In this document: one piece after another, positions 31,726-38,579 of the stretch | How the letters are laid out: every line of letters starts with the position of its first letter | Numbering within the stretch: position 1 is the first letter of the stretch | Source of the DNA: Selaginella moellendorffii | Taxonomy: Eukaryota; Plantae; Lycopodiophyta | Direction of reading: 5' to 3' | Length of the DNA: 64,000 nucleotides | Assembly: GCF_000143415.4 (NCBI RefSeq) | Contig: NW_003314261.1 | Coordinates: 4,856,418 to 4,920,417 of the forward strand | Program-made: the position numbers and the translations under genes | The notes under the pieces: generated by a model | Database searches by the model: none | The model's input: only the letters and a program-made list of their open reading frames with translations | What the model was told of the DNA's origin: nothing

Positions 31726-32005
31726 AGCGTTTTTCTTCATTTTTTTCGCTAGTGATCAGTCACCTGTACATAAGATTTTCTCGTAGCTTTAGAGCCAAGC
31801 GATGTATTCTGACAAGAATCTAGAATAATGGAAGTGGGCTTACTTTTTACTGGAGTTGCTCTTCCACTACAAGCCGCGCAAAATCATTTGGAAAAGGATA
31901 TTTCTGCTAAACAGCTCAAGCACAACTCAACAAGTTGGAGCAAAGTTACCTGTATAAATGGTGGTGATGGATGGGAGTCGTCACAGCACCGAGCGAGGAA
32001 GAGCG

Positions 32006-33214
32006 ATGGAGCTCGTCGTCCGCAAAGCAGTAGCAGCATTGGTGGTGAGTGTTGTTGTCACGCTTGTCCATGTGGAAGCTCAGCTCGTTGTTGGATACTA
32101 CGAGCAAAATGGATGTCCCATGGCCGAGGAGATTGTCAAGAAAGTTCTCACCGCGGCCGTGGCACGAGACCAATCCATCGCTGCTTCGTTGCTTCGTCTC
32201 CACTTCCACGACTGTTTCGTCCAGGTCCGTGAGCAACTTCTGTCTCGCCTTTCATCTCGGCAGCATCGTTATCGATTTGAAAAATCCGTAGTCACTGAAA
32301 GAATTCTTGCTCACCAATCGCCGCCAACTTGATGAACAGGGCTGTGACGGGTCCGTTCTCTTGGATCCACAAAACGGCTTCCCCGCCACGGAGAAACAAG
32401 CTGTCCCAAACTTCTCGCTCCGAGGATACAACGTCGTCGACGCAGTAAAGCAAGCTCTCGAACAAGCGTGTCCAGAGACTGTCTCATGTGCTGACATTCT
32501 CGCTATAGCAGCCCGAGATGCTGTTTCCCTGGTAAGAACTCCTGCTTCGTAAGATTTCTTTCGAGAACTTGACGAAGAATGCTTACCACCAGTCTGGAGG
32601 AGGAACTTGGCCAGTGGAAACAGGACGTAAAGATGGTGTTATTTCACTCAGGACCGAAGCGGAGGACCTTCTTCCTCCCACGAACGAAAACTCTGAAGAG
32701 TTAACCCAGAGGTTCCTTGATGTTGGTCTGACTCAAGATGAGATGATCACCTTGTCCGGTAAAGTTTCATAAGTTTGCTCTCGGCCTGCCACTGATCTTC
32801 TTCCAACTTCCAGGAGCACATACGATAGGACGAGCTCACTGTGTCTCTTTCAGCCAGAGGCTCTATAACTTCAGCCCGGAGTTTGATACTGATCCGAATC
32901 TCGACGCTGCTTACGCCGGGAAACTAAAGCAGGCCTGTCCGAGGAACTTTGATCCGAGAACTGTCGTGCCGCTGGATCCTGTCACCCCTTCCCAGTTTGA
33001 CAATCGCTACTACTCCAACCTCGTCAACAACATGGGGCTCATGATCTCAGATCAGACGCTCCACAGCGACATGCTCACCCAGTTTTCTTCCCAGTCAAAC
33101 GCCGAGGATGAAAACATGTGGCAGTTTAAGTTCGCAAACGCCATGGTCCGGATGGGTGCTATTAACGTCAAGGCTGAAGGCGAGATTCGCAAAAACTGCC
33201 GACTGAGGAACTAG
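32006..33214 (+). CDS. Class III secretory peroxidase (4 exons)
   Basis: [15 protein letters not shown]|[21 protein letters not shown]|[19 protein letters not shown]; canonical three-intron layout; TATA at ~31953. Confidence 0.97.
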
Positions 33215-33580: not shown

Positions 33581-33982
33581 TTATCCACCATCATCTGTTG
33601 TGCTCGTGCACATAAAAGTGCCTGCAAACAAGCCAAGCAAATAAAAGAAAGAAGGAAAAGGAGAGAGAAAGAAAGAACCAAGGAAGATGGAGAATTTTCT
33701 CGGCATACCTTGGAGCGATAAAACTGTGGGAGTGCTCATTCGCAGCACGGCGCCATTGCCATTCCTAGCTCTCCAAATCATGGAATCTAGCGAAGAAATC
33801 TGCCGCAATTTGGAGCCTTCGGTATTGGCGGCAGCGGCATTTGCCCGGAGAATCACGCAAGGCGATGATTTCGCAGCCAGATTTGACCTGGAGAGCGACG
33901 AGGAGGAGCGCAGCGCCTGGGGAGGAGAGACAAGGCGGCGCGCAAGCGCCATGGATGCCGCATTCCCGGATATTGTAGCCAT
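33581..33982 (-). CDS. Small organelle-targeted protein, possibly a diverged NFD6/NOXY2-like paralog (exons 33982-33709 and 33621-33581)
   Basis: Ser/Arg/Ala-rich presequence-like N-terminus, phase-1 intron after LSLQG, short terminal exon ending TDDGG*; telo-box at ~33997. Confidence 0.45.
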   Translation of the reverse strand: MATISGNAASMALARRLVSPPQALRSSSSLSRSNLAAKSSPCVILRANAAAANTEGSKLRQISSLDSMIWRARNGNGAVLRMSTPTVLSLQGMPRKFSIFLGSFFLSPFPSFFYLLGLFAGTFMCTSTTDDGG

Positions 33983-34098
33983 TCCCTCGCGCCTAAAACC
34001 CTAAAACATTATCCGCCAGCGTGGCAGACACGTCATCGTATTTTAGGGCTGATTTGCCATGTCATGAGCTCACAAGGGTTTAGGGCTTGGGGCTTCTC

Positions 34099-35257
34099 AT
34101 GGCGAGCAGGGGAATAGCGAGGCGCCTGATTGCGACAATGCGCGCGCCGCCGCGGCAATCGGCCTTCCAGCGGCCGCGATGCCTCAGGTATGATCTCCCG
34201 GCGCCGTTGCCTGCTCACGTACTTCGACACACATAGGATTCCTCGTGAAATCGCGGCGCTGGAGTCAATGCGGCCGTTTCACAGCACTCTGGCGTCATCG
34301 CGGCTGGTTTCCGGGCTCTCGAGCTGCGGGTTTCTACGTTTCGAAGGTCAGGCTCTCTCCGCTCGTTCCGCCGCTTGAATGCTTGCCTGCCAGTCGGTTG
34401 TTTGAGAGCCGTTCTTACTCATTCCAGGTGCTCGGAGGTCCTGCTCCACCGAGTCTAGCTCTAGTGACAAGAATGAGAAGTCCTTCTTCGACGAGCGCGA
34501 GCAATTGTCCGACACGAGCGATGGAGAAGGGAGCTATAGTGAGAGTGAGTCGATGTGGAGCCACGACGAAGGAGAGGGTGGTGGTGGTGGCGACTCAGAC
34601 CAGGGGTCGGAGTTTGAGGAGGGTGATACGTATCTCAACGACAACGATCTCTGGGACGAGAACGAGGGGATGGATGAAACACCTAGCAGTGAACTGACCG
34701 AGAAGGATACGGAAGAAAGTAAAGAGGTGGAGCAGCCTTCGGTCTCGGATAGATTGATGGAAGAACTCGCGCGTGTTCTTCCCAATGTTCCGGAGGACGC
34801 AGTGAAGAAGGCCGAGGAGAAGTTTAGGCAGCAGCAGGGGGAAGCTGGGCGGGTTCGTAAGGAAGCCGGCGCTTATCTCAGAGCGATGAAGAAGGAGTAC
34901 GACTCTAGATCGTTAGTCCAGGACGAGCACTGCAAGAAAGTTCATCAGAAGCTGTCCATGCTAGCACCGGATCCGGATGGGAGGTACCGGAGCTTGATGG
35001 AGGTGGTGTCGGACATAGACGTTCTACTGGAGGCGTACAGGAGAGTCAAGGCGGGTCCAGGTGGCGATCCATCGAAAGTTCCTCTGGACAACGTGAGCAT
35101 GGACTGGTTCCACAACACTCAAGCCAAGCTTAGAAACGGGACGTTCAAGCTGAGCCCGATCAAGGTGGTGGAGATTGAGAAGCGGGAGCTAAGCGGGATC
35201 GAGAGGAAGCGGAAGCAGTATCATCGTTTCCACAGGAAGCACCGGCAGCCATACTGA
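34099..35257 (+). CDS. Long isoform: NFD6/NOXY2-like N-terminus plus acidic linker plus group II intron maturase N-terminal (RT0)-like domain (exons 34099-34187, 34237-34346, 34428-35257; 342 aa)
   Basis: Acceptor ttccag at 34427 puts the exon in frame with ORF 34505..35257; YRSLMEVVSDIDVLLEAYRRVKAGPG...LDNVSMDWFHNTQAKLRNGTFKLSPIKVVEIEK follows the maturase RT0 pattern. Confidence 0.7.
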
Positions 35258-35510
35258 CGAGCGTAAGATCTGGCTTGGCTGGATTTCTGGGGCTAACTTG
35301 GAGGTGTGAACAAAAGCAGGACGCATTGTCAGCTATGTTAGCCCACCTTAAGTGTCGCTTCTTGCGTTCTTGACGAAGGCTTGTCAACCAGTAGACTGGT
35401 AGGTGTTGCTTGCTAGAAAAGAAAGAATTTTCCTGTTCGTGTCATCTGACCGGGTGAATCGTTCTCGTTTTTGACCAGATCGATTCGCGAACTATGTCAG
35501 CCCTCACTGA
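34099..35510 (+). CDS. NFD6/NOXY2-like small mitochondrial protein, short isoform (exons 34099-34187, 34237-34346, 35479-35510; 76 aa)
   Basis: Presequence MASRGIARRLIATMR; family motif RIPREIAALESMRPFHSTLASSRLVSGLS; terminal exon DRFANYVSPH* resembling the RFANYLSPI ending as I recall it for this family; GT-AG sites in phase. Confidence 0.65.
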
Positions 35511-36503
35511 AGATGGAGCGTGGCCACACCAGCACGACACACATCCGCTGCGAGGTTTACTACATTGGCTCTTCCCCTCTCTCACTCTTTCCTTTTTAAT
35601 GGATTTCTCTACTTTTCAATCCGACTGCTACTGCTGAGTCTCCGCTCGCTCTCTCGCGATTCGAGCCACCCGGGTATTATTATATGATCGCTCCAGCGGC
35701 CAGCCGCGTGGTCCTAGTTTGATCCGGTGATCTCGACGGTTGAAGCGTTTGAAGCTGGTTCGTACGCGAAGGCTTTGTGTCGGTGTGTGTAAGCGCACTT
35801 ACACAAGAATGTACTCCCCCAGGTAGCTAGCTATGCACACATTTCCAGTGATCATTTGGTTCTGGAGTTCCAGATATGTGGTTTTTGCAGGCTTTTTGAC
35901 GCGATCAGTCCTCGTCCAAACAGGTACGTTGTTGCATTAATGCCATCGCCGAGCTCTGCTATTGACATGCTTTATGGTATTTCAGTGCTGCTCCTGCTGC
36001 TGCTGCTGCTGCCCGAGATGGGATGATCCATCTGGTGGGATTTCGCTACTGCGGCTCTGTGCTCCCCCGCTGCAACGCTCAGATATGGTGAAAGTGACCA
36101 AAAGTTTTATTGCGAGCTACACAGATGGAATGAATGTAACACTACGAAGCAGCATCTCTTCCCCCCGCGGCTTGATATAACAAATTATATCGGAACAAGG
36201 AGAACGGAAAAGGCCTGCGCGAGAGGAAATGTTTAAGCCTCTTGGATCGTCGAGCAAAAAAAATGGTGCCTTGTGACAAGAGCTCCATCTGAAGGTGTTA
36301 GTAGCGGCCCAGAACCAGGTACCTTGTCTCAAAATGCGCTGGGCCGTGGAAGTTATTTGCTAATTCATGTGTACGTTTCTTTTTCTCCTTTCGGTGCTGC
36401 AGTAGAACGCGCAAAACTGGACCTTTCTTCGCTTGGCCAGACTTAAACACCGACCTCCTGGCTCTTTCGAGATGGTCCTGCTATCGAGGTAAGTTTCCAA
36501 TTT

Positions 36504-38579
36504 TCATTTCCGCATACCAGGAGGAACCATATCTTCTAGCAGGCCTTCGTCCGTGAAAGTCTGGCTTTGGCCTACTTGCCGGCTTTGCTGTTGGTGCTGC
36601 TGTAGAAGCTGTTGCTGATCCTGCTGGCTTCGCTGGTGCTGCCGCTGCTGCTGGAGAAGCTGGCTTTGCTGCTGGAGGAATTGCTGCTGCTGCTGCTGCT
36701 GGCTTTGCGCTCGAGCCGATGGAAAATTGAAGCTGGCACCTCTAGCTCCGAGGCCAGAGAGAAGCGATTGCTGCTGCTGCATTTGCAAGTGAGGCATAGT
36801 CTGGTACAGCGCCTGCGTGAACGATCCGGGGCGCTGGCTGCCGAAAGGATTCACAGCTCCAGCACCTCCTCCGCCTCCGCCGCCTCCAACTTCCGTCAAA
36901 CTCCTCAGCGTCGCCGGACTGTGGTGAGTGTGAGTACCTTCGTAAGTGGTGATAACAATTCCGGGGTCCTCGCAGGAACGCTCCACTCGCTTCTTCACTG
37001 GACACTTGCTGTTGGTGCAGCGGTAGTAGCTCCTGCGAGAGAAGAAAGAAAACTTGGTGATCGATCGGAAGAAAAATCCAGTTTTTTTGCTCACGTACCT
37101 TGGATGGGGGCTGTTCTTGACGGCCTTTTGCCCGTACTTTCGCCACCGAAATCCATCGTCCATGATATCCACGTCGCTGCGCGTCTGGAGAGCGTAGCGA
37201 GGCTCGCGGTTTCGCTTGGGACCTTTCTTTGGAGGCTTGGCTCTGGAAGCAAACGATTGACAGGAAAATTTTGGTGAGAGATCTGTGAGATGAGAGTTCC
37301 AGTCAGGGATGAAATCCAAATGCACAAATGCCCAGGATAAAAACAACTCCATGTTTTCATCATTGCCTTTGGAAGCACGAAAATCTTCCGTGAAAAATGC
37401 CAGTGTAGGCTCACGTATGCCCGAGGCGGGCATACGTAAGAGATGGATGGCTATGGCGTCCGCCAACACTGAAATTCATGGCAGCCCAGTTACGACGATG
37501 CAAATCCTCGCAAGCCCAAGAAGCATGAAAGCGCGAAAGCACGGAAGAAAGCAAAGAAACCGCAAGAACAAACCAAAAGCCCAATGGAAGAGAAGAAATG
37601 GTGAAAAGTTTGCCGAGAGTTCTTACGGTTTCTTTCCTTCCTGTTGTTGCGGCTGCGGCTCCAGCGACGACGATTTCTCCGCGTCCTCGGAAGACCCGGC
37701 CTTGCGCTTGAGCGATCCTCCGGACGATGCCACATTTCCCTTGTGCTCCTCGTCGCCATCGCTGGCTCCCGACGAGGACGTGAAGGACGTGGGAGTTCCA
37801 ATCGCCTGATCTCCTCCTCCTGACCCTCCAGACGCAATCGATCCACTAGCAGCAGCAGCAGCAACACCAGCGCTAGCAGCAGCAGCAGCATGACCAGCGC
37901 TCGCCAGATCCAGCTGCTGTTGATTCGACGCCGCCGCTACTTGATCGTCATCTGGGTCGTCCAAGAAAAATCCCGCGGGATTGTAGCTTTGTTCCAAGTG
38001 TTCTTGGTGGCGATGGTGGTGCTGCTGCTGTTGTTGCTGCTGCTGCTGCTGCGAGAGGAAAGTTTGCTGCCACCACGACGCTTCCACTCCGGATCGAGGA
38101 GTAGCAGCAGTAGCAGCGTTGTCAAAGTCGGCCAAATTCCAGTCGGTGTAGAGCCTCCCAGCGGCAGCAGCGCCACTACTGCTACTGCCTGGAACAGTGG
38201 AGCTGCCGGCCATGATGCCCGAGATGCCGCCACTGTAGAGAAGCTGCGCCGAGTCCACCATGGCCGCCATCGCGGGATCCAAGTGGAAGCTCCAGGGAGC
38301 CGCTGCTGCAACCGTGGAGTCCATCAGCGCTGCTGGCTGCGCGGCCGATGCAGCTATCCCGCTAGCGGTAGCGATCAAGGACGACGAAGAGCTGGAAGAG
38401 CTGGAAGAACTGGAAGAACTGGAAGAGAAAGAAGAAGAAGTTATCAGCGCTGTTGCTGTAGACCGCGATGGAGATGAAGAAGCTTCTGTAGCTCCGCCTA
38501 GGGTTTGGAGAATTCTCTCGAGCTCCTCTTGCTGCTGCTGCTCCTCCTCCTTGGCACTCTTGATCAGCCTCCTCTCCAT
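36504..38579 (-). CDS. WRKY transcription factor group IIc (3 exons: ~38579-37626, ~37242-37099, ~37033-36504)
   Basis: [37 protein letters not shown]|[18 protein letters not shown]...YEGTHTH; C-terminal [10 protein letters not shown]; poly-Q and poly-S tracts. Confidence 0.95.

Follow-up and report, generated by a model that had tools for sequence, protein, structure and literature searches.

The 64,000 nucleotides of nuclear DNA from Selaginella moellendorffii that make up the window analysed here contain, on the forward strand, a reading frame (34505-35257) whose 3' part resembles the N-terminal RT0 region of group II intron reverse transcriptases and maturases and then comes to an end. 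The locus therefore raises the question of whether an RT0 region that stands without a reverse transcriptase behind it is the relic of a maturase gene, a misread portion of a longer one, or part of a protein in its own right, and, in the last case, what that protein might do. The first-pass annotation of this DNA had matched 34967-35257 to the RT0 pattern and proposed a domesticated, RT0-only splicing cofactor. The gene model, the ancestry of the module, its family and its possible roles are considered in turn below.

Transcripts and products of the locus

Position 34967 is the first base of a codon, that of the proline in PDPDGRY, and the frame is closed by a TGA at 35255-35257. The open exon of 830 nt that had been claimed at the outset is borne out as the stretch 34428-35257, whose acceptor at 34428 is backed by RNA-derived contigs. 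The transcript evidence consists of contigs from four public runs, belonging to four studies (X1, X3, X12 and X13), aligned to 33800-36600. Because contigs of all four runs carry GT..AG joints, they derive from spliced RNA. The resulting gene model is presented in Table 1; all of its splice sites are canonical and are accompanied by pyrimidine tracts.

Table 1. Features of the DFR1-like gene, in positions of the window
Feature	Position	Strand	Remarks
Exon 1	34099..34187	+	Coding from ATG 34099; Arg-rich presequence; contigs start at 34089-34091; splice 34187/34237; residues 1-30 match XP_002960508.2 exactly
Intron 1	34188..34236	+	49 nt, GT..AG; joint in runs X1 and X13
Exon 2	34237..34346	+	Common to both isoforms; ends in phase 1 (G|GT)
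Intron 2, long isoform	34347..34427	+	81 nt, GT..AG; joint 34346>34428 in X3 and X13, loose ends in X1
Intron 2, short isoform	extends to 35478	+	Joint 34346>35479 in X13; loose ends in X1, X3 and X12
Cassette exon	34428..35398	+	971 nt; coding 34428-35254, stop 35255-35257, then 141 nt untranslated
Acidic tract	34430..34951	+	Residues 68-241; predicted largely disordered; from charge count
Module, RT0-derived by sequence comparison	34952..35182	+	Residues 242-318; last residue is the invariant Lys of the maturase IPK motif
Basic tail and TGA stop	35183..35257	+	24 residues, net +7, plus 3 His; in place of RT1 (RPLGIP...)
Intron 3	35399..35478	+	80 nt, GT..AG; 3' of the long-isoform stop; joint in X1; contig ends at 35397/98 and 35477/78 in X3, X12 and X13
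Last exon	35479..36318	+	3' limit approximate; contigs continue into the WRKY gene region

Exon 2 can be joined to either of two acceptors, at 34428 or at 35479, the latter choice skipping 1132 nt. When the cassette is included, translation of the joined model gives the 342-aa sequence of RefSeq XP_002960508.2 without a single difference. When it is skipped, the product is a protein of 76 aa that has residues 1-66 in common with the 342-aa protein and receives its final 10 residues from the last exon, in which the stop (35508-35510) is followed by 3' UTR. The cassette is spanned by single contigs in all four runs, one contig from X1 holding both of its flanking junctions, and at least three runs support each isoform, either with joints or with loose ends that match them. 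The 971-nt exon is an alternatively spliced cassette, and a single promoter serves a gene of approximately 34099-36300 (+) that gives rise to two mRNAs. The first-pass annotation missed this cassette arrangement, in which the first two exons are shared with a 76-aa product, as well as the membership of the long protein in an already named family, DFR1, which is described below.

The segments of XP_002960508.2 follow one another in the order basic presequence, acidic tract, RT0 module and basic tail. No acidic residue occurs among the first 33 residues of the Arg-rich presequence, and the net charge then falls to -27 over residues 67-235, where the tract contains Trp-acidic motifs and a helical stretch rich in lysine and glutamate. 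The RT0 module has a net charge of about zero, positive charge being confined to the tail. Because the first 33 residues are Arg-rich and free of acidic residues, and in view of the location reported for DFR1, the presequence would be expected to take both products to mitochondria, and the long protein is probably mitochondrial. By means of its cassette exon, the locus would thus allow one presequence to serve two unrelated mature proteins.

The surroundings of the gene are also transcribed in part. The DFR1-like gene and a WRKY transcription factor gene (36504-37469, reverse strand; WRKYGQK, with a long poly-Gln tail) are arranged tail-to-tail, the latter starting approximately 1.2 kb away. 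RNA contigs are continuous from 35478 past 36600, which means that the 3' ends of the two genes abut or overlap. A CTG/CAG-type microsatellite is present in this shared 3' region (35982-36019), and small indels distinguish the contigs of different runs nearby (36063, 36160, 36193 and 36255). On the other side, a 133-aa ORF on the reverse strand (33581-33982), whose N-terminus, rich in Ser and Ala, is similar to a transit peptide, is covered by RNA contigs over 33800-33985; its counterpart in the other haplotype is a called gene of 104 aa without a Pfam domain (2417-2884 of that piece). Further upstream is a class III peroxidase gene (31958-32332, forward strand), which is also found in the other haplotype (651-2043 of that piece), showing that synteny is kept between the haplotypes.

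Relationship of the C-terminal module to RT0

In a phmmer search of 1.84 billion representatives, the C-terminal 104 residues matched the N-termini of full-length group II RT/maturases of 797, 730 and 962 aa (E 2e-9, 1.1e-7 and 2.2e-7, respectively) and, in addition, many maturase fragments. The closest relative among the full-length matches is located within cox1 in the mitochondrial genome of a fungus; its domains include RVT_1, Intron_maturas2 and HNH, and the module would therefore belong to the mitochondrial class of introns. A 1437-aa bacterial subtilase/RCC1-repeat protein was also returned (phmmer E 1.5e-4) and was rejected as a false positive, which arose from six 'LKEDGTVWAWG' repeats; single-query matches near 1e-4 thus need checking.

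Profile comparisons lead to the same part of the maturases. A single-sequence phmmer search of the PDB produced only noise. The family profile had one match there, residues 19-97 of LtrA, at an E-value of 0.045. Furthermore, when a profile of the fern and angiosperm modules was aligned by hhalign to a profile of maturase N-termini, the probability was 99.0 and the E-value 6.7e-18 over 85 columns, the alignment stopping at IPK. Since that profile was built from fern and angiosperm modules only, the maturase ancestry extends to DFR1 itself, beyond the Selaginella copy. In an alignment of 35 sequences, the consensus D.L..AY..IKSKPGN...TLDGI...WF......L..G.[FY]KF.P.R.V.IPK is visibly retained, and the only invariant columns are one Leu and the Lys of IPK. 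Past this Lys, the maturases continue into RPLGI..PRDK, whereas the Selaginella protein and its short relatives continue into a basic tail.

The domain libraries are nearly silent on the product. Pfam identified nothing relevant in the ORF, in its C-terminus or in ten relatives, with no RVT_1, Intron_maturas2 or GIIM, and NCBIfam gave only a sub-threshold match to TIGR04416, in which residues 27-82 of the C-terminal piece were aligned to model positions 3-62 (E 0.05 to 0.011). Similarly, the three forward frames between the stop and the WRKY gene contain no RT-like frame, no remnant of RT1 (RPLGIP) and no domain X frame.

The phmmer, profile and hhalign results agree with the original pattern match, which likewise stopped at IPK and was followed by a basic tail and a stop. 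As judged by sequence comparison, the homology of the module at 34952-35182 to RT0 of group II intron RT/maturases is confirmed, the likeness being far beyond chance. The accompanying claim that YADD and domain X are missing also stands: the predicted product has none of RT1-7, YADD or domain X, and would not be a working maturase.

Structure prediction was applied to residues 230-342 with a 35-row alignment. The AF2 model has a mean pLDDT of 78.9 (86-95 over the module) and a pTM of 0.61, and consists of four predicted helices, an extended stretch and a tail helix. Foldseek returned no match for it in the PDB. In a structural alignment against 48,161 chains, residues 28-124 of 6me0_C, a group II intron RT, were ranked first (Z 4.8), and residues 1-62 of 9d5x_A, the group II-like G2L4 RT, were ranked second (Z 4.2); both are weak scores, barely above those of unrelated helical proteins. 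This ranking of a predicted model may be said, weakly, to agree with the sequence evidence. Similarity to RT0, on which the first-pass reading hinged, is found in the LtrA and hhalign profile matches, with a faint structural counterpart. The shapes nearest the model in the ESM Atlas belonged to a cluster of hypothetical proteins of 324 aa from Streptophyta and to clusters of group II RT/maturases, and a feature search of the Atlas, run twice, gave no usable match. The Atlas also contains hypothetical proteins of Actinomycetota (109 and 138 aa) that have a shape like that of the RT0 model at a TM of approximately 0.5; these may be free-standing RT0-like proteins, or may reflect a common helical arrangement.

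Membership in the DFR1 family

Short proteins that end at the same point as the 342-aa product are encoded by a second Selaginella gene and in Diphasiastrum, ferns and angiosperms. The Selaginella paralog has 355 aa (LOC112343584/LOC112342137), and the Diphasiastrum complanatum member has 273 aa (54% identity, E 2.5e-23). Among ferns, members were found in Adiantum and in Ceratopteris richardii, the latter having been added by a profile search. In Adiantum nelumboides, at least eight DFR1-like genes with consecutive locus tags (MCO5561735-MCO5561746) form a tandem array on one contig. When one angiosperm member was used as the query of a word search, 318 proteins of approximately 310-320 aa were retrieved; the best 120 of these are all angiosperm or unlabelled, are 59-79% identical to the query over their full length (the query itself aside), and have no Pfam domain. 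The word-index search with the family profile was swamped by acidic low-complexity words, so that it added only ferns and gives no verdict on bryophytes, gymnosperms or algae, and the same type of search with the Diphasiastrum module alone recovered only itself.

The Arabidopsis member, AED92429.1, is AT5G17460, or DFR1. It is adjoined by an EF-hand gene and an HMA-domain gene, neighbours that we take to fit the AT5G17460 region of chromosome 5. Pairwise BLASTP comparisons among the lycophyte, fern and Arabidopsis modules gave E-values of 1e-13 to 1e-16, and the C-terminal module GPDGRY..EV.SD.D.L..A[YF] ... F..Q..R..[YF].F.P, located at the protein end, is present in the Selaginella protein.

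The likeness extends to the organization of the genes and their products. All four of the mapped genes (this locus, the Selaginella paralog, Diphasiastrum and AT5G17460) are built of two short coding exons at the 5' end and a single large one, which comprises the acidic tract and the module; in the last three of these, the intron before the large exon is located just ahead of the acidic tract. The charge layout is likewise common to the family, with a basic presequence, an acidic middle (-10 to -27), a near-neutral module and a basic tail, the tail being present in the Diphasiastrum, fern and angiosperm members. When full-length Arabidopsis DFR1 was modelled with 88 sequences, confidence was low over most of the chain, with isolated helices, and the module had the same order of elements. 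In these models, the DFR1 family looks like a disordered acidic protein with one small helical module.

A maximum-likelihood tree of the module (88 columns) included 20 maturases, none of them a named plant maturase. With weak support (85/0), one branch places the short proteins opposite these maturases. The lycophyte sequences are placed on short branches beside the maturases, and long branches lead to those of ferns and angiosperms; in the angiosperm members, the KSKPGN...TLDG loop has been replaced. The Selaginella members, as the least diverged, thereby serve as the bridge that makes the ancestry visible, a bridge that is needed because Pfam annotates none of the DFR1 family.

On this sequence evidence, it is probable that the segment represents the C-terminal module of a DFR1 protein from a lycophyte, and that RT0 of a mitochondrial-type group II maturase gave rise to this module, the only folded part that the DFR1 family has conserved. 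What plants have kept of such maturases in the nuclear genome has been thought of as nMATs that retain domain X; at approximately 700 aa, as compared with 342 aa for the Selaginella product, they are indeed much longer, as had been remarked. The DFR1 family would thus constitute a second kind of nuclear maturase descendant, one that retains RT0 only and is conserved from lycophytes to flowering plants, and its ancestry would provide an evolutionary identity for DFR1, a stress protein whose mechanism is contested. Of the first-pass proposal of a domesticated RT0-only cofactor, the part that stands is the RT0-only derivative, which is transcribed, spliced, intact and conserved; the cofactor role is a matter for the next section.

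Possible roles and related systems

AT5G17460 appears in expression studies of ABA, salt and cold. In a commentary, DFR1 is presented as a drought- and freezing-responsive gene, the protein of which was reported (Ren et al. 2018) to bind and inhibit ProDH1/2 and P5CDH, the proline catabolic enzymes in Arabidopsis; the same commentary states that DFR1 was not detected in ProDH1/P5CDH complexes, and that the enzyme assay has been questioned. The protein is further reported as mitochondrial in Arabidopsis and has been described as 'of otherwise unknown function'. Inhibition of proline catabolic enzymes is the only published role of DFR1; it is disputed, and rests on one paper. A literature search found no paper joining DFR1 and a maturase, domains were discussed in none of the papers found to mention AT5G17460, and the surveys of plant maturases that were found deal with long proteins only.

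The architecture of the long protein suggests how it might act. The break falls directly before RT1, and a basic tail takes the place of the remainder. Since RT1-7 and the X/thumb domain are missing, the protein could presumably neither polymerise nor act as a classical maturase, and would have to work by binding. The helical RT0 module and the basic tail might together form a docking surface, while the acidic tract might constitute a regulatory or effector arm. As to the partner, a protein is the candidate that we tentatively favour; an organellar RNA or a maturase is plausible but less likely, and something else is less likely still.

An RNA-linked role, in which the RT0 module and the basic tail would grip organellar RNA (group II intron domain IV-like) or dock on maturases, and in which the protein would act as a cofactor, as a competitor or as an RT0 supplied in trans to MatR/MatK, is possible, if somewhat doubtful. 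The conservation of the basic tail across the DFR1 family fits such a role, as does the end point of the module, which presumably is where MatR-type truncations begin; however, the responses of AT5G17460 to ABA, salt and cold, and of DFR1 to drought and freezing, would be atypical of a core splicing factor, and the partners named for DFR1 in the commentary are enzymes. The RT0 regions of maturases are thought to confer intron specificity via basic residues that contact domain IV (PMC9321910), so that descent from RT0 speaks for contact with RNA, yet the net charge of the Selaginella module is close to zero and the loop noted above has been replaced in angiosperms. MatR and MatK are without this region, and the RT0 of nMATs is described as degenerate (PMC9321910).

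In a more far-reaching form of the RNA-linked role, which we regard as speculative and very unlikely, the DFR1 family would be the RT0 half, now separate, of the maturase system in plant mitochondria, that is, a nuclear-encoded module that acts in trans to anchor the RT0-less MatR, possibly the degenerate nMATs, or intron RNAs. If this were true, plant mitochondria would use a 'split maturase', the stress phenotypes of dfr1 would stem from altered organellar RNA processing, and alternative splicing would allow a host gene that encodes a small mitochondrial protein to deliver the Selaginella module. The maturase ancestry in itself suggests RNA binding, intron splicing in dfr1 and contact with MatR as questions for DFR1.

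A separate issue is how much of the long protein is made from this copy of the gene. In plants, a stop as far ahead of the last exon junction as that of the long isoform is expected to attract nonsense-mediated decay. Since the distance here is 141 nt, decay may set the level of the long mRNA, and the long mRNA of this copy could be partly non-productive. Taken to its limit, this would mean that the long mRNA is mainly non-productive and the 76-aa protein the real product, the cassette being a captured duplicate of the large exon of the paralog that is lost to nonsense-mediated decay, and the function of the family falling to LOC112343584. This is unlikely. A canonical stand-alone paralog does exist, and the divergence of the cassette coding sequence between haplotypes (1.1%) is no lower than that of the flanking non-coding DNA. 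However, the other haplotype also encodes a 342-aa protein, with an intact frame and six substitutions over the whole protein. Nine differences, of which 5 are non-synonymous and 4 synonymous, separate the haplotypes over the coding part of the cassette; these are too few to gauge dN/dS. Within the module and tail, the count is 1 non-synonymous against 3 synonymous. Moreover, the module at this locus is the member of the family nearest to real maturases and to Diphasiastrum, on a short branch, and the contig depth of the cassette, although a poor measure, is similar to that of the neighbouring exons in the four runs.

The alternative named by the first-pass annotation, a neutral relic in the form of a NUMT or a decaying nMAT gene fragment that is open by chance, would account for a product that is only a maturase fragment and on which Pfam is blank, but it is scarcely tenable for a segment that is spliced, expressed and in RefSeq, that has neither stops nor frameshifts in either haplotype, and whose truncation point and layout recur in Diphasiastrum, ferns and angiosperms. 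Constraint on the family is instead evident, at the sequence level, from its deep conservation: the module and the truncation point are common to Selaginella, Diphasiastrum, ferns and angiosperms, and the angiosperm members are conserved along their whole length, as the 59-79% identity among the best 120 of 318 illustrates. It is just as hard to sustain that a full-length nMAT gene has been misread and that its RT and X exons lie further downstream, since, although plant nuclear genes have introns and the match ends abruptly, the 3' splice of the cassette leads to a last exon without an RT-like frame, the WRKY gene starts on the opposite strand within approximately 1.2 kb, the paralog locus has a tubulin gene 30 nt past the stop, and every member of the family ends at the same place.

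The reading preferred here, of a DFR1 protein with an RT0-derived module, can be compared with four known systems. The 76-aa isoform may be NFD6/NOXY2-like, to judge by the motif of that family, and it resembles such small mitochondrial proteins, which may represent the host gene, in its size and its Arg-rich presequence; Pfam had no match in residues 1-66, and the Atlas returned nothing either. With the group II RT/maturases (nMAT1-4 and LtrA), the long protein shares an RT0 that is homologous up to IPK and, in the case of the nMATs, a nuclear gene with an N-terminal presequence. Unlike them, it has no RT1-7, YADD, X/thumb or D/En, and with the X/thumb domain it would also be without the domain held to act in splicing.

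Land plants also retain MatR and MatK, which likewise descend from group II intron maturases and have been truncated. The truncations are complementary, however, in that MatR and MatK keep domain X and are without RT0 (PMC9321910), whereas the Selaginella protein keeps RT0 only. Finally, the Selaginella protein and Arabidopsis DFR1 are alike in their C-terminal module (BLASTP E 7e-13), in their layout and exon plan, and in the order of helices in their AF2 models. The two modules are nevertheless only about 33% identical and the acidic tracts do not align. The Selaginella module has kept far more of the maturase consensus (AY..VKAGPGG...LDN..WF), and its large exon, unlike that of Arabidopsis DFR1, is a cassette in a gene that also gives rise to a 76-aa protein.
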